In this document: piece after piece, positions 1,986 through 39,498 of the stretch
Position numbering within the stretch: the first letter of the stretch is position 1
How the letters are laid out: each line of letters begins with the position of its first letter
Assembly: GCA_977016875.1 (NCBI GenBank)
Contig: CDRNST010000104.1
Span: forward strand, 5,332,001 to 5,396,000
Origin: Pavona decussata
Lineage: Eukaryota
Length of the DNA stretch: 64,000 bases
Direction of reading: 5' to 3'
Program-made: the position numbers and the translations under genes
Notes under the pieces: model-generated
Database searches by the model: none
What the model saw: only the letters and a program-made list of their open reading frames with translations
What the model was told of the DNA's origin: nothing

Positions 1986-3099
1986 CTGACCTTGGCCAAG
2001 AATAGTGCTCTTGGTCCTAACCCGATTAAACAGCCAACACTTAAATAATTTTTGCGAACGTTTTGTTAGGTTAAAAGGACGTTAAATCAGATTTTTCACT
2101 TGTTGTGAGTAACAAGTCATAGTTTTCATAGCTTTCCCGGTTAGATTTGTCAGTTACCAAAACTGAGATGTTTGTTTGGTGCCGGGTTCAGTGTGGACGG
2201 AAGTGCGTTCTCTACAAATTTTTCAAGTTGTTTGGCTGCACAACATTGTAGCATAGACTCTTAAAGTCAATTGATTTTTTGTCAAATTTACACTCATAAA
2301 AAAAACGCCCCGCGCGTAAGTTTGATTTGATGATAGCTTGTTGTTAGTGGCAGGTTTCTAAATAGGTTTCCTTGTCACTATCAACTTATAGTATTCGAGG
2401 ATAGTTTAACAAACGTAGCTATACAATTTAGCGATTTGTTCGTCTTTTTATCAGTTAATTTATGACGTGGGCAATACTTTTCCCGCAAAGATTTTTTCGC
2501 ATCCTTCATAATAGCTTTTGCTGTGAGGGCCATGGCGCGACATTTGGTTTCCCGCATTAAGTGCCGGCAATAAACAAAGGCTTCAAAAAATGTATCTCAT
2601 CTTCTAATTGTTTGCCTTCGAATTTCAAATGTTTTGCCTTGATTTCTAGAGAACTCGCCATGTTTCATAATCAAAGCGGCATACCTATGCGAATTGTGCC
2701 AAAATGAGTGTCTGCTCTGAAAAAAAAAATTAAGCGTTTCTTGTCGCTTATATCACAGGTTAGTCTTGCCATATTTAGAGGCGCAGCAGTAGTTTTAAAT
2801 AAGTTAAAATAAATTGAAGTTGGAAGAAGTTGAGGTCTCATTCTCAGTTACCACGATTAAACTACACAAACCATCAAAGAGGCAGCGAGAGCTTGTAGTT
2901 ATCGAACTAACAGCGGAACGCCCCTAATTGAAAGAACTAAGCGAAATCTTTTTTAAATCTGGATTGGCTTTGCGAGACATGGCATCTGGAAAATAACTTT
3001 TAATGTCAAAATGTACCTTAGTCGGGGGTTTAATTTTACGCTCTGCATGTGCTTTGCCGATCAATAAGTTCGAAAAAAGCGTTACCGCAAACATTACAC

Positions 3100-3554
3100 C
3101 AACACATTACACTTAATTTTCATCGGCTAACGATAATGAATAATTACAGAGCTGCCACTTTTGCATTTGTAGGGTATAAAATTTGGGAAAAAATTCCTTG
3201 TAAATTAAAAAAAGCTCTCATATAATAGCTTGTACAAGCAGTACAAATCGTACCTTTTAAATACCCAATATATCATTACTATTGTTTTTTATGTAAAAAT
3301 GGTAGTAAGTTTCTATTATTGCACTTTTATTATTCTTTACTTTTTTTTTGCTCTAGTTAGTTGCACATTATAGGCCAGTTGCACGTGGCAGTGACCAAGT
3401 CGAAAGCCTAAGCTCCTTTGGTCACTGCGCACACTTAACTTTTCACATTTATGTAATTTAAGGCTGTCTTTATGTTACTTTTCTTATAAATTGTAATTTC
3501 CTTTTATTGTGAACCATTGAAATAGTGCATAATAATAAAAAACTTGAAACCTTG
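3100..3554 (+). mobile_element. 5'-truncated LINE 3' end with 3'UTR stem-loop
   Basis: NNYRAATFAFVGYKIWEKIPCKLKK/LSYNSLYKQYKSYLL is an ORF2 C-terminus. There is a perfect 11-bp hairpin, GCAGTGACCAA (3388-3398) / TTGGTCACTGC (3418-3428), then AATAAA and a (CTTGA)-type tail. Confidence 0.7.
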
Positions 3555-3884
3555 ACTGCAGGGTGTGCAAAAGACAAAAATGGCGGCTAAAGGGGAAATC
3601 AAGAAGTTCCCTTATTTTTCTTTCTTTTCTTGTTTTCTTCCATTGTCCATTTACGGTAGGCATCAGCCATTGTTAGACTGATGCTGTTCTAAATTGTAAA
3701 CTATGGCCTCGATGTGGGGTGCAGGAATTGTACAGCATGATTGTAATTTTAGCACTCGAGGATGTTGGAAAAGCTTTGTTTGTCTTGCAACATCTTAGAC
3801 TTAGGTAAACATTTTATTTGCCAGAAGTATTTACTCGACTACAGTGCCGTGATTTTATGGTACCTAGTAATATAACTTATACAA

Positions 3885-4140
3885 CTGGGCCCAGTCGTTC
3901 AAAGTCCGATTAAGCTAATCCTGGATTAACGTGAACTTTGATTTGAGTTTGATTACTAATCAGTAAAGATTCTTCCAAAAGATTTTTGGCCCTCAGTTTT
4001 GACTTAAACTTTTCTTTACCTTTAGCTTGAAATTAGGCTTTAAAACGACTTTAAAACGACTTTTAAAGAGCGAACTGGAAACTTCATTAAACTTTTAATC
4101 GTAGATTAGCGTTAATCGGCTTTCGAACAACCCGGTCTTG
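3885..4140. mobile_element. MITE / non-autonomous DNA transposon (~250 bp)
   Basis: Imperfect TIRs: GTCGTTCAAAGTCCGATTAAGCTAATC on the left and GATTAGCGTTAATCGGCTTTCGAACAAC on the right. Confidence 0.7.
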
Positions 4141-4360
4141 TAGTTTACTCTCGAACTAAACGTGTTCGATTGCATTTCTACATCAGTTCATAGAGCTAGC
4201 AACTTGGCAACTTTAGCGCCTTGTTTTATTTCCAAGCTAGCAACTACTTACAGCATGACAGCCAAATCGACAGATCAAACGTTTGTAGCAAACAGCAATG
4301 ATAGCGATAAACAAGATACACTTGCGGTGTTCTTGGAGACTTCCTTAAGTTCCTGAATAC

Positions 4361-30639: not shown

Positions 30640-32760
30640 ATATATCAGAAGCTAAATGCTTTGGACGTCTAACAGATGAAGTTTGTGATGCATTACAACT
30701 TCACGCCGATTTAAGTGTGTCATTCAGAAATGGGAAAAACCGCTGGATTTTGTAGCTTGAAGGCTCGTTTTTAGTCCTTTGGGCATTCACTTCGGGAACT
30801 ACCGAAAGCGTGTTGAATAAGTTCGGTTTCATTCGTTTGGAAAAAGGTGAGATCTTTTGGATGAGGACCTGAAGTGACTTCAAAGGAATGGAAATTTAGC
30901 GCAATAAAGCGACCACGCGCGGCAGAGTTTATTATCGTATCCTTTTGTTCTTGACGTGTGAATGAACTGCATAGAATGACTTGGGACTTTACATGCATTT
31001 AGTTTTTTTCGCAAAACATTTCCAAGTTCGATATGTATTTATGAAAATAGAGCATTTTGAGAGCTTCAAAAAGAGATCTTGAACAAGGCTTTTTGGTCAA
31101 TGTTGGCCGAAGTTCGATGTTTGTTTGTTGATTGTCAGTTCGAACTGCAAAGTTAATTTATGCGAAGCCGTCTTCTTCCGACGCGTGTGTGAATTCCCGA
31201 AGGTATTATTGCAGAGATTCTTGAATTTGAATAAAATTTAAGTTCATCCCGAAAATGTTGCTTTTTTATTTGTATTTTTTAACGAGAAGGTCGATTTGAC
31301 GGCCGTAAAATGTGGTCTGAATGAGTTTCTGTGGTCGAGATTTCTCAACGTTGCGCCGTCTTACAGTTCCGCAGCCGACTGCTCCTTCTCGTTTAGATTT
31401 TGAATTATTGAAGTTATTCCCTACAGAGTAAAAAAGTTGTTAGATGAATTTCACTTTCTTCTTTAAATAAATCGAATGAAGCCTGGATTTTTTATATTAC
31501 TGCGAACGCTGAGCATCCTGAGTTCTTGATATTAACAGCCGTGTTTACGTTTGATATTCAAGATCGTTCCGATAAGCACGTGCTTGATTATAAGCATAGA
31601 ATAAACTATAAAAGTTGAGAAATTATCGGATTATCAAAGAAAAGTTGCAGTCCGACAGCTTTGAAAAGTTTTTTGCGAATGAAACTGAGCTATTGTTCGT
31701 TCTCAGATGATAAACAAAAGGAAATTGTCACACATTTCCTCAAAGGGCCTTCCGATTTCTATAGTTGTCTTACATTCCCGAGTGACATCCGACGTGAACA
31801 GCGATGAATCGGCAATGAGTCTAAACAATAGCATGAATATATGAATACTAAACGACCCACGAAACGTGGGTACACACTTAAATCGACGTGAAGTTGTCAC
31901 GGTGTCTAACAAGAAGCAGCTTATAACATTTGTGAAATTTGTCTATGCTGAACTGAAAAAGAGAAGATGGCATTCCTATCAGCAAGCAACCTTCTTGAGA
32001 ATTCAAGCTCAACTATGTATTATGTAATAAAAGATGCTATTGTTGTGCAAGTAGAGGATGCTGGGATTGACAAAAGGAAGCTTACAAGTTTTTCCACGGA
32101 TGGAGCTTCAGTTATGACAGGGAAAAGAAATGTTGTTGCTGCAAGATTGCGAGCTGATACCAAAGAGTCAATAAACATACACTGCATCTCCCATCGCTTG
32201 GCATTGGCATGTGGTGATACCAATGACAGGATTTCCTACATCAAGGAAGTGGAGAAAGTTCTCCTCCAGTTGTGGAGTTTCTTTGAAAACTCAGCTAAGA
32301 AAAACGCAGCTTACGCAAATTAGCAACAGAGGCAAAAAAAAAGGTAAGAAAGTGATTCCAGAAGGTATGCAGAAGTAGATGGTTATCACCAGAAAAAGCA
32401 ATAGAAGGAGCTTAGGAGGATTATGAGGCATTGCTACAAACACTCCGAGTTTTCAAAGAACGTGGAGATGCGACTGCCACTGGTCTCCTACAGCAAACAA
32501 GCAACTTGAAATTTCTTGGCACCATATACTTGCTGCAAGAAGTACTCCGTATACTTGGCCACTTGAGCAAAACTTTCCAAGAAGGAGAAGTCTGTCTGAA
32601 ATTCATTGCTCCAGCGATAGACTACACAGCTGATCGTCTTGATGAAGTTTGTCATCAGCGTAAGCACTTGGCAAGATTAAAGGAAGACTTGACTGAGAAT
32701 GGTAAACTTCAAGCCTAACACCCCACATGGAGAAGCAGCTTAAGAGTTTAACCTCACAAA
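30640..32760 (+). pseudogene. hAT transposase (ZNF862-like) fragment, interrupted by an insertion
   Basis: FGRLTDEVCD | insertion | SNKKQLITFVKFV...FSTDGASVMTGK...IHCISHRLALAC...RSRWLS are hAT DE, DG and CxxH motifs. Confidence 0.85.
30691..31901. mobile_element. Non-autonomous DNA transposon (~1.2 kb, ~30-bp TIRs)
   Basis: ACAACTTCACGCCGATTTAAGTGTGT (30695-30720) is the reverse complement of ACACACTTAAATCGACGTGAAGTTGT (31872-31897) with one mismatch. The flanks rejoin into the hAT frame. TSD is ambiguous. Confidence 0.85.
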
Positions 32761-33138
32761 GCAGTTAATAACTTAGTTTTTTTCATCAATAGTGACGCTT
32801 TGCCTTTAACCAGTTAAGTATTGAGATCTACTAGGTCATCAAGCAGAATGCTATTACTTACATTCCTAAGCGAAGTAGAACTGTTACTTATCAACCCTCA
32901 TTTTTCATACGCTCATGCAGCACATGGAATGTTCTGCAGGCTGAACTTCGCACAAGCCACACCTCTCTAGCCTCATTTAAAAGTTTACTACTTTAATTCT
33001 CGGTTTTCAGCTGACGTCATTAGATTATGCAAATTAGGTTTCCGCCATGTTGGTGCCCATGTGCGGTGTGAAATTGTATGCAAATCTATGCCATTTCTAA
33101 GCGCTCACGTCAAAGTCTTCGAGTAATTCATCTCTCTA

Positions 33139-35864
33139 ATGGATATTTCCCAAGAAAGCGACCCAAAACCACAAGATGAGATACCAGTGCTTTCATCCTA
33201 CGCAAAAAATCTCGAAAGCGACGTCCGAGTGCGCTATTTAAAGAAAATTTCTGTGGTTGGCGTAGATCCAGCGGCCATACCGAGCGAGCAGTTCAGCTCA
33301 GAATGTTTGCCTCCTATAGAGGTCTCGGACTTGGTATCCTATTTAGTTTTGGAGACGAGTTACTACACAAATAAGCCATTTAAGGCCTTCAAAAGTTTGG
33401 AGGCATACAACCAAATGGTTTCTGGTTTTGTTGCGTCAGTTCAAGGGAAAGAAATCACGGGCAAGATTGTTGTTGTGCCCAAGGTGAGACATTCACAGCG
33501 AAAGAACCATCCTCTTGTGAACATTTGGATGATTGTAGAAAAGGACGGCACCATTATCTCCGCGCATTGCTTAGGCTGCAAGGCAGGACTGGCTGAATCC
33601 TGTTCTCATGTAGCAAGCGTGATGTTTTACGTCGAAGCTGTGACACGGATTCATGGAAAGCTCGCCTGTACACAAACGAAATGCATGTGGATTTTACCAA
33701 CATATGTCAACGAAGTATCGTATGCAAAGGTAAGGGACATAAACTTTTCGTCAGCTAAAAAACTCAAAAGCGCGCTGGAACAGAAAATCGAGACATTACA
33801 TCAAAATACTGGGGAAGGAAGCAAAACAGAAGAACGGTGCGATCAAACCAGTTTGCGTCCAATGCCATTCCATCATATGGAGAAATGCAGGAAGTCTATG
33901 CCAAACTTAACGCTTTCAAAATCAAAGCTGTAGCACTTAGCCTAATCGATCCCCATGCCAACCAATTTATTGATGGTAGCCGCACACTGCCAATTATTCC
34001 TGACTTGTTTGAAACGGAAAATCTTAAGCTGGACTACCCAGAATTAATCAAAATGTGTGTTGGAGTATCACTGGGTGTTCCTGAAGAACACATAAGCAAA
34101 GTAGAAATCAGCACACGTGCTCAAGCAAGTAGTTCTGGTTTTTATAGACATCGTGCTGGCAGAATTGGTACATCTCAGTGCTTTTCAGCCTTTCACACAA
34201 ACCTTGCTCAGCCCTCCCAGTCTTTGATCGAGACAATTTGTTACCCAGGCCTCTATAAAGTCAACACCAAAGCTACGAGGTACGGCCAAAAGCAGGAAAG
34301 TGATGCCATAAAGGCATATGAAACATCCATGAGAGCATGTCATGTGAATTTAGAGGTCAAGAAGTGTGGGTCATTCATCAACAAAGAGCATTCATTTCTT
34401 CATGCAACCCCTGATTTTCTTGTGTCCTGTGACTGCTGTGGAAGTGTAGGTGGAGAAGTTTAATGTCCAATAGTCATTGTTGATGGCAACTTTGAGGACT
34501 ATGTTAAACATAAAAATTCCTGCCTGGAAAAAGTTGATGGGAATTTACAGCTGAAAAAAAGTGACAGGTACTACTATCAAGTACAGCAGCAGCTTTTCTC
34601 AGTCCCAAATCTGCAATATGTTGACTTTGTTGTGTGTGCCATTGATAAGGCAAAAAACATTCATTCATTTGTGCAGCGTATATATCCAGATGTGCAGCAC
34701 TGGAACTTTGTTTTGCCTAAACTAGAATTATTCTGGAGAATATGCATTCTCCCAGAGATTTTGAGACGGTGGTACACCCGAAGGGGCACAGTACCACATA
34801 CACTACCAAGCAGGGATGCTTTTTGTTTTTGTCGCGCAGAAAGAGACGAGGACAGCATTTTATGTTGTAACAAGGACTGCCCTTATCAAAGGTTTCATCC
34901 GTCTTGTCTCTCTCTCACCTCTATCGCAATGCCAAAGACCTGGTACTGCCCTCACTGTTCCAGACCTCCTCAGTTCAAGAGGGAAAGGAATACCAGAAAA
35001 TCCGCACAACCTACTTTTGTGTCAGATCATGCAGAGATGAAACGTGATAGTATTTGTATTTGCAAGGCAAAGCCTACCCCCACCGACAAGTTAGTTGAGT
35101 GCCATGGAAAAAGCTGCAAAAATGGAAAATACTTCCACCTTGCTTGTCTTGATTTGAAGCGAATGCCGAACAATCGCAGAACTACCTGGAAATGCCCTGC
35201 CTGCAAAAAGGTTGCCCCTGCCCAAGCTACAACCACCTCTACCACTTGTTCTTCTTTGTCAGATTCCTCCAGTAGTGAGGATGAAAGTGATGTCGTTATA
35301 ACAAAAGTCACCCAGGGTGAAACTGATAAGACCAACGCATTGGCAAATCTAACAGACGACCATTTTGAATTAACTATTAACCCTACTGGATAGCTAGATT
35401 GTGATATCATCCAACGAGCTCATGTTTTATTACAGGCTGAGAATCCGGCAGTCGCAGGTTTTCAGCGACCAACACTTGGCCCTGTTAGAAATTTTGATGT
35501 TGTTAGTGGTGAATTTGTTCAAATTTTGCACACTGGGAATGATCATTGGGTGTGTGTGAGCTCAATTGGGTGTGTGCCTGGATATGTAAACCTTTTTGAT
35601 AGCCTCTATCATGACTCAGTCATAATTCAAGAAGTAGAGGAACAAACAAATGATTTGATAGGGGGACGTTTGATTGCCCTTGACCCAAAGCCAGTGCAGC
35701 AACAAAGCAATGGGAGTGACTGTGGGGTTTTTGCAGTTGCATTTGCCACCTGTTTAGTGTTTGGAGTAGACCCCACATTTATGAACTTTGATGTGCAAGG
35801 TATGAGACCTCATTTAGCAACATGTCTAAGAAATGGCCGAATCAGCTTGTTTCCTTCATTTTAA
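33139..35864 (+). pseudogene. SWIM - YqaJ/lambda exonuclease - PHD - PHD - Ulp1/C48-like protease fusion gene (one frameshift, two nonsense lesions)
   Basis: SWIM: AHCLGCKAGLAESCSH. YqaJ: [33 protein letters not shown]. PHDs: CFC..CCNKDC..FHPSC..WYCPHC and CIC..CHGKSC..FHLAC..WKCPAC. Protease: G*LDCDII, NDHWV, FDSL, QQQSNGSDCGVFAVAFA. ORFs 33837, 34632 and 35526 share one frame. Confidence 0.88.
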
Positions 35865-36019
35865 AAACAGATGATAATTTACAACAGTAAATGGAACATG
35901 GAAAATCGTCCGACTGTAATTTTGTATTTTATCATTTTCAGGCATTTCAATTTTTGATTCTGTGGCTTTGATTTAAAGCAATTCAGACAAAGCCTTCACA
36001 TAAAATATTAGGCAGCCAT

Positions 36020-36224
36020 TGTGTGATTCCAGATAATATCCACACCTCCCACATGGAAGGTTTAATTTTTTTTTTTTTGAGCCCTCCTTCCCCCCCCCCC
36101 CCCTGGAATTTCCAATTAAGGTTCATACTTTTCCTTATAAATTTTGGCTGTTGAGACCCCCTTCCTCTTGGAATTTCCAACGACCTTCCACGGGGAGGGA
36201 ATGAATATTTTCTGGAACCACACA
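36020..36224. mobile_element. MITE (~205 bp) inside the ISL2EU element
   Basis: TIRs TGTGTGATTCCAGATAATATCCA and TGAATATTTTCTGGAACCACACA. Confidence 0.8.
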
Positions 36225-37544
36225 TTCCCACCACCCATGCACTGCATGTCAGTAAGTGTGGGACACCTGTATTTCTTTTGCTGAAGAACACAAAGTCATA
36301 CCATTACAGATGTAACAATGTTTGCAAAAGCAGAATTCAAAGAAAATATTATACCTAAACGTAAAAGGGGAATGGACATTTAAAGGGCAGAGGCCATTAC
36401 ATTTTTTTACATGAGAAGTGAACACTGTTGTAAACTTAGAATATCCAGTAGCCGGAGCCATGATATAAATGAGCTTATTTATTACCTTTACAAATTCATA
36501 CCAATCCTCTAATTAAGCCACCCCTCTTTAGAAAAAGAAAGTTATTAAGCCATTCCTCCCCTTTCAAAAAAGATCTCTTACAAATTTTCGCTACTTTGAG
36601 ATTTGCGTATAATTTTTCTTTAATGTTCCCAACCCATGAAATAACACATGACAACGAATATGTGGGTAAAAGGGGTAGGGGATGAAGTACTTGAGTTTTC
36701 GATGCACATCCATCTTTAAGGATCATACAGGTCATGTGGCTTGGCAACGAGAGTGCTAAGCCTGACATGGGGTCCTCATCCCCAGGCCACTGGGAGGCTT
36801 TATTCCCATCTGTGGGGTCCTAATTCCCAGGCCCTGGCCTCACATGGGGTCTAATTCCCCAGGCCCGGAGAGGTACTTATCCTCTCGAAAAGACTGATCA
36901 TCAACCAACTATGTACTCATTGTTACCATATTAACACAGCTATCCTGGGGTCTGAGTCTATCAAGATAGGTGGAGCACTTTATCCCCTCCCAAATTTTAT
37001 AACATTTGTAACAAAGTCTCAATGGGAACAAAGACCCTCTAACAGGGTTAACATCACATAACACGTGAGCCAAAATAAATAATGGCACAAGTAATAATCA
37101 TTTCTCATGACATTGATGGCACTATGTAGAAAGTCACAAGGTTGATTAATTACTTTGAATAAAATCTGTATTCTGTACTATAATTATGTTGCAAATATGC
37201 AGACAAGACAATGTTTGGACCAATGTTTGGAAAGGTTAAGAGAATTATGAAGTGTACAACGGGAATGTGATGCATGCTTGCTGTAATGTGATAAGCCTAT
37301 AATGACACCGCATGTCATATGCACAAGGCTGGACTGACCTTTTGATGTAAACACAGAGGCCATTGCATTACAGATCTGTTTTCATAGAGACCTAAGCTGT
37401 TAACTATTGCAATTTCCCTTTCATGGTTGTCAAATTAACTTAAAATGATATTATCTAGCCCCTGAAATAAATTAAACACCCAGGTGGCTTAATCAGAAGA
37501 CTTAACACTTTCACTCCCAGAGTCAATTATGGAGACCTGTAATT

Positions 37545-38057
37545 TTAAAGTTCTTCGTTTCGATTTCCCTCTTCTTCTGTCGAAGTACTTGGCTGACTAA
37601 AGTCGATCTGAGCAACAGGAATAGAAGGAAGGCTGCTTTCTAAGCGCTTTTGACGTTTCTCTGCCACTTCGCGTTCTCGTTGTTCGACCGCAAGTTTCTG
37701 TCGTTTCTTTGCCCTTTCAGCTCTCTCTAGGTTCGCTTCATGGTCTAATTGAGGACTATAATTTTTCTTGCCCAGTTGCAATGTGGGCACCCAATCAACG
37801 TTGTGCTTATCCCAGGAAAGAGCTGGCTTCCCAGAAACAAAATGCTTGCCACATACCCGTTTGCTTGTGAGCACGTTTTTCGAAACCGTGTCTCCGCGAC
37901 TGATCGCTTTTACCCATTTTTCTCTCCGCTCTGTAGTCAGTTCTTCTTCAAATTCTCCTTTGTTGGTTGCCACTGAAGGTATTGGATAATATCCAATCCC
38001 TTTATCTCGGTCACTTCGACTTCCACAACCAAAAACAATGCAAAGCACCATTGCCAC
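37545..38057 (-). pseudogene. THAP-domain N-terminus of the ISL2EU transposase (DDE part not found)
   Basis: MVLCIVFGC...YPIP...RREKWVKAI...RVCGKHF...DWVPTL is the C2CH THAP signature. It starts ~110 bp inside the right TIR. Confidence 0.85.
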
Positions 38058-39498
38058 GCTTTCTTTCTCACTGTGATATATCTATTGAGCACGTTTTTTT
38101 TGGGCACCAACATGGCGGATAGCAACAGTTGTCAAGGCGGAGGTCACGTGGGTGAAAACCAAGAATATTACAATAAGGCTCTGAACCTGTACAATGTTGA
38201 TGACATCAGAACCTGGAGAACAATCTGTCCCAGGTGCAACATAGCGAGGACTCTACTGTGCTCGCCGATGTGCTGTTTCTAGCAATTTGAACTTCTGTTT
38301 TTTTTTTCTCTTGATTTTTCTTGTTTATATATAAGTAGTGTAAGTTTTTAAGTTTGAAATAATTAACATGGGATCTGCTGTAATTGGCTATTAAGGTAAT
38401 TGGCTGTAGTGGTCTCTCTGTCTAATAAATTTTTTCACGTATTCATGAATATAGATCCGTATCTGTATTTAAGTTAGGCAAAGCAAAAAAAATAAATTTA
38501 ACAGATTTGAAGTCCAGAAACAGATCTCACTAAACTGAAGTCCTTAACAGAAGAATACTACAGAGCCAATGCACTGTTCTCACCATCTGCAGTAAATCCA
38601 ACTAGTAGGACAATTGGGCATGTTTTGCCTGTGCACAATAAGCAAATTTATGACATCTACAAGCAGGTCCTTTAAACAGTCACGATAGAGGGGAGGGAAG
38701 CAAAGCATATTGTATTGCACAAGTTAAGGGTAAACACCACATAGCAGCAGAGGCGGAAAGAAATATTCAAGCATGAATTTGTCATGCAAATATGGTTACC
38801 AGAACCTTGTTTCTATACCCCAAGCAAAAGTGTTTACATACCCTCCTGGATTTTCAATGACTCTTGTTTCTGCTATTGTGGTTTACAGAAAGCAGATCCC
38901 ACATGTACAAGCTGTTACTTTTGCAGTGATAACCTTTTTTCACTCATCCATGACAGTGACAAACAGGTAAAAATTTTATCTGGTTTAGCTAAGTAGCTGT
39001 CTAGAAAATGTCTGCAAAAGGGATGAAGCCCAAAAAATATTATGGATATTTCATCCGCGAAAGTGTAGAGGAGGGGAACATTTTATCTACTTTAGCTAAG
39101 GCTACTTAGAAAATGTACTCAAAAGGCAAGAAGCCCAAAGGGATATTATGGATAGAGTTCTGTTGTTAAAAGCAAGTGTCCTAGGTATTGCACCAGCGTA
39201 AGACATTTGTTTATGTTTACCTTACTGAATGGGATAGCATTTATTATCACTAACTCATCCCAGTCAGAAATGCACAATTTAATTTGTTGAAAAAGTTTCC
39301 ACACAGAAAGAAAAGCAATGTTTCTAAATATAACGTTTTATTGACTGTTTGAACTTGTCTGACATATAATTTAAAGTTGTTCATTTTCAAATAAAGTTGT
39401 TTAACTGAACTCATAATGCAACTGTTCTGTTGTTATGCACCTGTCAATGTTAAACCCAGAGGAACAGGTAGATGAGATGCATTCCCTTACAGAATTTA

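Follow-up and report, generated by a model that had tools for sequence, protein, structure and literature searches.

The window, a stretch of 64,000 nucleotides from the genome of the stony coral Pavona decussata (contig CDRNST010000104.1, positions 5,332,001 to 5,396,000 of the forward strand), carries a decayed ISL2EU element at positions 32998-38165. ISL2EU elements are cut-and-paste transposons related to PIF/Harbinger. Two convergent genes are recognized in this copy, an accessory or helper gene and the remnant of a transposase gene. A first-pass annotation of the window had described the helper as an ISL2EU accessory protein fusing a SWIM domain, a YqaJ exonuclease, tandem PHD fingers and a SUMO-protease-like domain, spread over four open reading frame (ORF) pieces. 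The element, the domains of its helper and the lesions are located as follows.

32998-38165, no strand assigned: ISL2EU-type DNA transposon, decayed copy of 5168 bp (about 6.4 kb in intact siblings)
33139-35864, plus strand: helper gene, a pseudogene in the window, of ~908 codons, intronless, with SWIM-like, YqaJ, PHD, PHD and C48 domains
33310-33651, plus strand: SWIM-like N-terminal domain, residues 58-171, ligands C144, C147, C155 and H157 at 33568-33609
33848-33849, plus strand: 1-bp deletion (frameshift) in a C run relative to the intact sibling, within the overlap of the first two ORF pieces
34035-34793, plus strand: YqaJ / lambda-exonuclease-type nuclease, residues ~300-552, with D426 (34413-15), E440 (34455-57) and K442 (34461-63, TAA in the window)
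34824-34958, plus strand: PHD finger 1, ING-like, residues 563-607, C4HC3 ligands conserved
35055-35204, plus strand: PHD finger 2, residues 640-689, Pfam PHD-1st_NSD 9e-6, C4HC3 by regular expression
35283-35303, plus strand: motif resembling a SUMO-interacting motif (SIM-like), an acidic/serine run followed by a V-V-I-T core, 36 residues before GWLD
35355-35864, plus strand: C48 (Ulp1/SENP-type) cysteine protease, residues ~745-908, with W752 at 35391-93 (TAG), H803 at 35544-46, D821 at 35598-600, Q856 at 35703-05 and C862 at 35721-23
37545-38057, minus strand: transposase remnant, THAP domain and linker only (Pfam THAP 1.3e-9)

The copy in the window is dead. A frameshift, two stop codons and a shortened transposase gene make it a relic without functional consequence. 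The helper gene appears as one ORF piece in one frame (33139-33933) and three pieces in another (33837-34463, 34464-35393 and 35394-35864). An intact sibling copy on contig C11, of the kind that the first-pass annotation had proposed to look for, provides an uninterrupted helper ORF of 908 aa (L002:1641-4367). Alignment to this ORF confirmed that the four pieces form one intronless gene, as first described, and revealed exactly three breaks in it, the 1-bp deletion and two nonsense codons (K442 AAA>TAA at 34461-63 and W752 TGG>TAG at 35391-93). Both nonsense codons had been placed correctly, at 34461 and 35391. The frameshift is a single event as proposed, but its position had been given as ~33870, about 20 bases off the actual site at 33848-49. 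The codons for the His, Asp, Gln and Cys of the protease, reported as intact, are indeed intact in the window. Besides the breaks, 83 substitutions separate the window gene from its sibling. They fall on the three codon positions in the proportion 28/23/32; 32 are synonymous and 51 are not. Such an even spread over codon positions is the mark of neutral decay. Pfam still recognizes YqaJ (1.1e-8), PHD (8.5e-8), PHD-1st_NSD (9e-6) and Peptidase_C48 (1.1e-8) on the window pieces, all above the gathering cut-offs except the second PHD-type match. Full-length analyses were based on the naturally intact contig C11 copy.

Domains of the helper protein

Conservation was assessed by aligning the protein with 53-54 homologues, and the structures of its two halves were predicted by AlphaFold2. 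The SWIM domain is the weakest of the domain calls. The predicted fold of the N-terminal domain comprises four strands and a helix and contains the motif C-x2-C-x7-C-x-H. It superposes on residues 113-213 of ZSWIM8 with a Z score of 9.4 and a root-mean-square deviation of 2.8 Å over 98 aligned residues (VIA-align). C144, C155 and the neighbouring H143 are invariant in the 55-sequence alignment, C147 and H157 are conserved to at least 90%, and all four ligands are invariant in 32 more distant sequences. A canonical SWIM finger has C-x-C-xn-C-x-H in a beta-beta-alpha unit; the amphioxus member P0051 shows the C-x-C of this motif, and the ESM Atlas neighbours of the domain are labelled SWIM-type. 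Pfam SWIM did not match the domain even at E 10, and it is therefore named SWIM-like.

The YqaJ nuclease is matched by Pfam on the intact copy with 3.2e-12. Its predicted fold resembles LHK-Exo (Z 15.9) and lambda exonuclease (Z 14.7), with a Foldseek E-value of 7.5e-7. D426, E440 and K442, the residues of the PD-(D/E)XK motif, are invariant across the aligned homologues. Pfam Viral_alk_exo is also matched by 26 of 32 aligned proteins, i.e. the query and 31 relatives.

Tandem PHD fingers had been proposed, and C4HC3 zinc ligands were found in both. The family profile of PHD finger 1 matches the fingers of ING3, YNG1, ING1 and ING2 in the PDB (E 7e-12 to 1e-10). The ligands of PHD finger 2 are conserved to at least 90%. 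The SIM-like motif farther downstream, at the end of a disordered linker rich in Ser and Thr and with a V/I-x-V/I-T core, is present as a strict pattern in 31 of 54 homologues, located 35-37 residues before the protease; close variants occur in others.

The first-pass annotation had named the lack of a C48 fold as an argument against its reading. The fold was found. The model of the C-terminal half (predicted local distance difference test, pLDDT, 85) yielded SENP5 as best Foldseek match (E 2.5e-8, template modelling (TM) score 0.64 on the target), followed by SENP1, SENP3, SENP2 and Ulp1. Over SENP5, SENP1, SENP2 and Ulp1 the E-values extend from 2.5e-8 to 1e-5 and the TM scores on the target from 0.5 to 0.65. 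With Peptidase_C48 the window piece scored 35.7 bits and the intact protein 28.9 bits, at a cut-off of 20.7. The family profile matches an Ulp1-like SUMO protease (2.9e-7) and SENP5 (1.7e-5). In 54 sequences H803, D821, Q856 and two tunnel-type tryptophans, W752 of GWLD and W804 following the His, are invariant, and C862 is conserved to at least 90%.

Transposase, element ends and ISL2EU membership

ISL2EU has been defined by a THAP-DDE transposase accompanied by a YqaJ ORF (PMC4482050, PMC4122938, PMC9179366). In the window only the 5' part of the transposase gene is left. Other copies hold 1238 extra bases at window position 37553/37554, which indicates that the window copy lost most of the gene by a deletion of 1.24 kb with its junction at about 37553/37554. 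The intact sibling on contig C11 encodes a transposase of 518 aa (L018:3594-5150, minus strand), convergent to the helper ORF and composed of THAP (6.5e-10), HTH_Tnp_4 (1.3e-18) and DDE_Tnp_4 (2.8e-50) domains according to Pfam. Inverted repeats of ISL2EU 'usually' begin with GG, which is a soft criterion (PMC4482050). The repeats of the coral element start with TCTCGG and TCTTGG, thus with TC. The sibling transposase with its THAP-HTH-DDE_Tnp_4 order, the YqaJ second ORF and an AT target duplication fit the published definition and assign the element to ISL2EU, as the first-pass annotation had done.

Six copies of the stretch, including the window, were found in the 602-Mb assembly, with 92-97% identity. 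Their similarity spans window positions 32996 to 38167 exactly, including the flanking AT pair. AT flanks both sides of all five independent insertions. Three paralogous empty sites contain a single AT, and the filled site in the window reads AT-element-AT. Since uninterrupted host-repeat paralogues carry one AT, the dinucleotide is a genuine 2-bp duplication of the target, and the element itself extends from 32998 to 38165. The ends and the intergenic region comprise the following features.

32996-32997, no strand assigned: left copy of the target-site duplication (AT), from paralogous empty sites
32998-33011, plus strand: left terminal inverted repeat TCTCGGTTTTCAGC, two mismatches to the reverse complement of 38152-38165
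33012-33019: perfect palindrome TGACGTCA, resembling a cAMP response element (CRE-like), adjoining the left inverted repeat, candidate promoter site
33042-33059, plus strand: subterminal 18-mer CCGCCATGTTGGTGCCCA, inverted at 38101-38118, candidate THAP binding site
35865-37544, no strand assigned: spacer between the two convergent genes, without a conserved long ORF
38152-38165, minus strand: right terminal inverted repeat TCTTGGTTTTCACC, 14 bp
38166-38167, no strand assigned: right copy of the target-site duplication (AT), from paralogous empty sites and other copies

All copies carry the 18-mer near either end, about 45 bp inward from the terminus. With its GGGCA-type core it is taken here as a candidate THAP site. 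A CACGTG box near the right inverted repeat (38135-38140) is a further candidate promoter site. At about 36050-36300 (L002 4600-4800) the spacer of all copies contains a high-copy short repeat with a poly-C tract, on which contigs from RNA-type libraries of several corals pile up to a very high depth. The element itself sits within another repeat (window 32650-32997 and 38166-38520), which has at least 40 genome copies and served as the source of empty sites. ORF fragments just upstream (31967-32718) had no Pfam match; they resemble a hAT-type transposase by eye only. The copies at C110:643-649 kb and C35:2061-2068 kb share both flanks and consequently represent one insertion that was segmentally duplicated. 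The first 139 bases of the element, from the left end to the helper start codon, occur alone with 97-98% identity at several other sites (C88:2588489-2588628, C83:457505-457644, C36:400990-401129 and C67:5244662-5244800). These solo left ends are probably short non-autonomous derivatives.

Expression data were available as assembled contigs, and the RNA nature of the runs with the same species label is presumed. These runs yielded short, near-identical contigs, patchy over the helper gene and nearly absent from the unique flank. Two coral metatranscriptome RNA-Seq runs contained contigs of 0.9-1.7 kb with about 92% identity that cover most of the helper gene. The contigs showed no splice-like joints inside the helper gene, save one. 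This joint, L002 2043>4104 (runs X10 and X12, two coral metatranscriptomes), skips 2060 bases of the helper gene, which agrees with a related element of other corals having a derivative that lacks an internal part.

Distribution and origin of the protease module

The first-pass annotation had considered that the protease segment might be a separate insertion absent from other copies. It is not: the segment is in frame in all genome copies in which this region is retained, in further families of the genome and in at least 50 full-length homologues. Much more divergent ISL2EU families of the same genome (e.g. C65, C88, C80, C64 and C441) have a full-length helper convergent with the transposase; the C65 helper ORF shares 50% identity and matches YqaJ (2.6e-17) and C48 (1.4e-7). 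A word search retrieved 142 relatives; more than 60 clusters of 880-1000 aa have both YqaJ and C48, at 45-89% identity. The domain order is the same in full-length homologues, and the best match is from Oculina patagonica (89%). Named homologues belong to Oculina, Montipora, Stylophora, Acropora, Nematostella and three Branchiostoma species, and two originate from the jellyfish Sanderia. The database names of homologues are automatic labels, e.g. 'PHD-type domain-containing protein'.

Other helpers are shorter. In the same genome the helper of another family (L038, C83:541000-548999, ORF 2757-4163) ends after a single ING-like PHD finger, so that short and long helper types coexist in one genome. 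A full HMMER scan with the N-terminal domain and YqaJ obtained 9047 representatives at E <=0.001, among them 564 at <=1e-30. From these searches 31 near-full-length distant relatives with 26-39% identity were studied; ten of them were looked up, and the nine with names are from pipefish, abalone, periwinkle, tick, mayfly, thrips, calcareous sponge and amphioxus. YqaJ was present in all 31 and C48 in none. A single C4HC3 PHD finger lies 2-18 residues from the C-terminus in 18 of the 31. Helpers that end in one PHD finger include P0253 (Sycon ciliatum), P0247 (Haliotis), P0256 (Syngnathoides) and P0257 (Ornithodoros); in its source the Sycon ciliatum protein even carries the name 'Inhibitor of growth protein 1'. 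Long forms were collected with the long query and short forms from the best 150 representatives, hence the set is a sample and not a census.

A tree calculated on the columns of the N-terminal domain and YqaJ only placed all C48 carriers in one clade (support 0.88). The single tip in this clade that fails the C48 pattern still has a Pfam C48 match. As the carriers form one clade and the distant relatives are devoid of C48, the second PHD finger, the SIM-like motif and C48 go back to a single acquisition. The basic ISL2EU helper combines the SWIM-like domain with YqaJ and has one PHD finger or none. Finger 2 and C48 are a single, old, lineage-specific extension, now in cnidarians and cephalochordates. 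This refines the first-pass annotation: a single PHD finger is widespread in ISL2EU helpers, and the second finger and C48 are specific to this lineage.

Database entries of 520-650 aa were considered as a YqaJ-only version and rejected, because they are gene models ending inside PHD finger 1, PHD finger 2 or the YqaJ tail. Real short forms exist only among the more distant relatives. With the C-terminal module alone as query, all hits were fragments belonging to this family, and a free-standing PHD-PHD-C48 gene that could have been the donor was not found.

Proposed function and comparison with known systems

The locus is probably best explained as a dead ISL2EU copy whose intact relatives encode a helper of the order SWIM-like, YqaJ, PHD, PHD, SIM-like and C48. 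The interpretation of the gene as an ISL2EU helper with a C48 domain is supported; nuclease activity, chromatin targeting, de-SUMOylation and the role suggested in the first-pass annotation, to steer integration or counter silencing, are inferred. In the proposed mechanism the THAP-DDE transposase would excise the element and insert it into A-AT-N sites. The PHD fingers may bring the helper to chromatin, and the SIM-like motif to SUMO-modified proteins. The nuclease would resect the 5' strands of the double-strand ends left by transposition, which could favour homology-directed repair of the donor site. C48 would act on silencing, repair or chromatin factors in the vicinity and remove their SUMO, or a related modifier, which would keep the element accessible or shape repair.

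Several observations weigh against this explanation. No ISL2EU helper has a known activity, substrate or binding partner (PMC4482050). An abundant family of the same genome (~20 copies; L025, C10:4956000-4963999) combines an intact THAP-HTH-DDE transposase of 490-496 aa with a mere stump of the helper, i.e. an N-terminal fragment and a YqaJ piece of 158 aa, without PHD finger and C48. The success of this family suggests that the element may not need the helper in cis, or may receive it in trans. PHD finger 1, aligned to ING3 and YNG1, retains the cage Trp, but Ile or Val stands in place of the cage Tyr, and the ligand may therefore differ from H3K4me3; the cage positions are those of ING2 and YNG1. 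The SIM-like motif might be no more than a strand that belongs to the protease domain. Evidence for transcription is weak: the contigs are compatible with transcription of the family, and they do not show that of the window copy itself. As judged from its sequence, the C48 domain might act on SUMO, on NEDD8 or on ubiquitin, and the CE-clan deubiquitinases OtDUB, SseL and RickCE are among its matches.

Among the alternatives, the most probable is that an active C48 protease acts on another modifier, NEDD8 or ubiquitin, in the manner of bacterial CE-clan effectors and SENP8, and hits cullin or ubiquitin signalling instead of SUMO. OtDUB was matched with 2.9e-4, SseL and ubiquitin-bound XopD were matched as well, and RickCE_cat reached ~1e-3 in two homologues. 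The best sequence and fold matches, however, are all SUMO proteases, with 2.9e-7 for the Ulp1-like enzyme and only 0.1 for SENP8, and the acidic SIM-like motif lies just upstream of the protease. Action on another modifier is rather unlikely. Self-cleavage of the helper was also considered. The protease would free the nuclease from the PHD/protease part, similar to adenain, and would not act on the host. In adenoviruses, poxviruses and Polintons, proteases of the CE clan serve in maturation, and the Ser/Thr-rich linker ahead of the coral protease is predicted to be disordered (pLDDT under 50). This linker lacks a conserved Gly-Gly cleavage motif across 54 sequences, the nearest folds are SENP/Ulp1 and not adenain, and a capsid or polyprotein context is missing; self-processing is improbable. 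The second PHD finger and C48 might instead be a captured host fragment that hitch-hikes by transduplication without benefit to the element. DNA transposons do capture host fragments, and the Ulp1 domain borne by Mutator-like elements (MULEs) began in this way (PMC13317346); the successful family with a helper stump manages without the module. Yet at least 50 divergent homologues from Anthozoa, Scyphozoa and Cephalochordata (42-90% identity) carry the module in frame, with invariant catalytic His, Asp and Gln and a nearly invariant Cys, and decay is confined to dead copies such as that in the window, which makes mere cargo very improbable. That the frame, broken three times in the window, represents separate YqaJ and PHD/protease ORFs or chance open frames is hardly conceivable, given the continuous 908-codon sibling ORF, the many independent gene models of 880-1000 aa and the lack of splice-like joints in the contigs except 2043>4104, which more probably reflects a copy with an internal deletion.

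For the second gene of ISL2EU the literature mentions a YqaJ domain only, with the function given as unknown (PMC4482050). A search of the available literature found no paper on YqaJ combined with Ulp1, C48, a SUMO protease, PHD or SWIM in a transposon, nor on PHD fingers in ISL2EU helpers. ISL2EU with its YqaJ ORF and Ulp1 on Mutator are known; no description of a helper combining YqaJ, PHD fingers and C48 was found. The helper is modular and chromatin-type. Many lineages add a PHD finger, and one old lineage adds a SUMO-protease-type domain with intact catalytic residues. Concrete hypotheses for the second gene follow, namely end resection, chromatin targeting and de-SUMOylation. SUMO is central to both transposon silencing and double-strand-break repair. 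A SUMO protease carried by a transposon would for this reason probe how mobile DNA fights or uses silencing and repair in early-branching animals. If true, it would be an animal transposon-encoded enzyme that counteracts silencing or steers repair.

The coral element agrees with ISL2EU (PHIS / PIF-Harbinger-like) in the THAP, HTH and DDE_Tnp_4 domains, the YqaJ second ORF, the AT duplication and a size of about 5-6 kb. It differs from published ISL2EU, for which only YqaJ is named, by the addition of the SWIM-like domain, two PHD fingers and C48 to the helper, by inverted repeats starting with TC instead of the usual GG, and by convergent genes separated by a spacer of 1.7-1.9 kb. The nuclease shares the fold (Z 14-16) and the D...E-x-K motif with lambda exonuclease, LHK-Exo and viral alkaline nucleases. 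In contrast to these enzymes, it is embedded in a multidomain chromatin-type protein, and no gene for an annealing-protein partner was seen in the element. SENP/Ulp1 enzymes have the same fold, His-Asp-Cys triad and Gln, the Trp of the WL(N)D type and the His-Trp pair, whereas the coral C48 domain is compact (~165 residues), shares 14-21% identity and is devoid of an N-terminal regulatory region of the SENP kind. The ING/YNG PHD fingers, readers of H3K4me3, have the C-x-C...C4HC3 layout and the cage Trp in common with PHD finger 1 (profile E ~1e-11), but where those fingers have the cage Tyr, ahead of the first Cys, the coral helper has Ile or Val.

A fusion of Ulp1 to a transposon accessory protein has been described in plants. 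VANDAL MULEs have captured an Ulp1 domain and joined it to their anti-silencing protein VANC (KIU), and the fusion is conserved across eudicots (PMC13317346). The role of the KIU Ulp1 domain is undescribed as well (PMC13317346). KIU (Kaonashi Ulp1) and the coral helper both represent an Ulp1/C48 domain joined to an accessory protein and conserved for a long time. KIU differs in belonging to the Mutator superfamily of plants, in its fusion partner, in having neither nuclease nor PHD fingers, and in its independent acquisition. By analogy, and tentatively, the ISL2EU lineage of cnidarians and amphioxus might use its own SUMO protease, tethered to chromatin through the PHD fingers and the SIM-like motif, for the de-SUMOylation of silencing or repair factors at the element, in parallel to plant VANC-KIU. 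A SWIM zinc finger and an Ulp1 protease also occur together in one transposon protein, the transposase of Zisupton / KDZ elements. There the domains are part of the transposase, whereas in the coral element they are located on a separate nuclease-bearing helper, next to a transposase of the IS5/Harbinger type.

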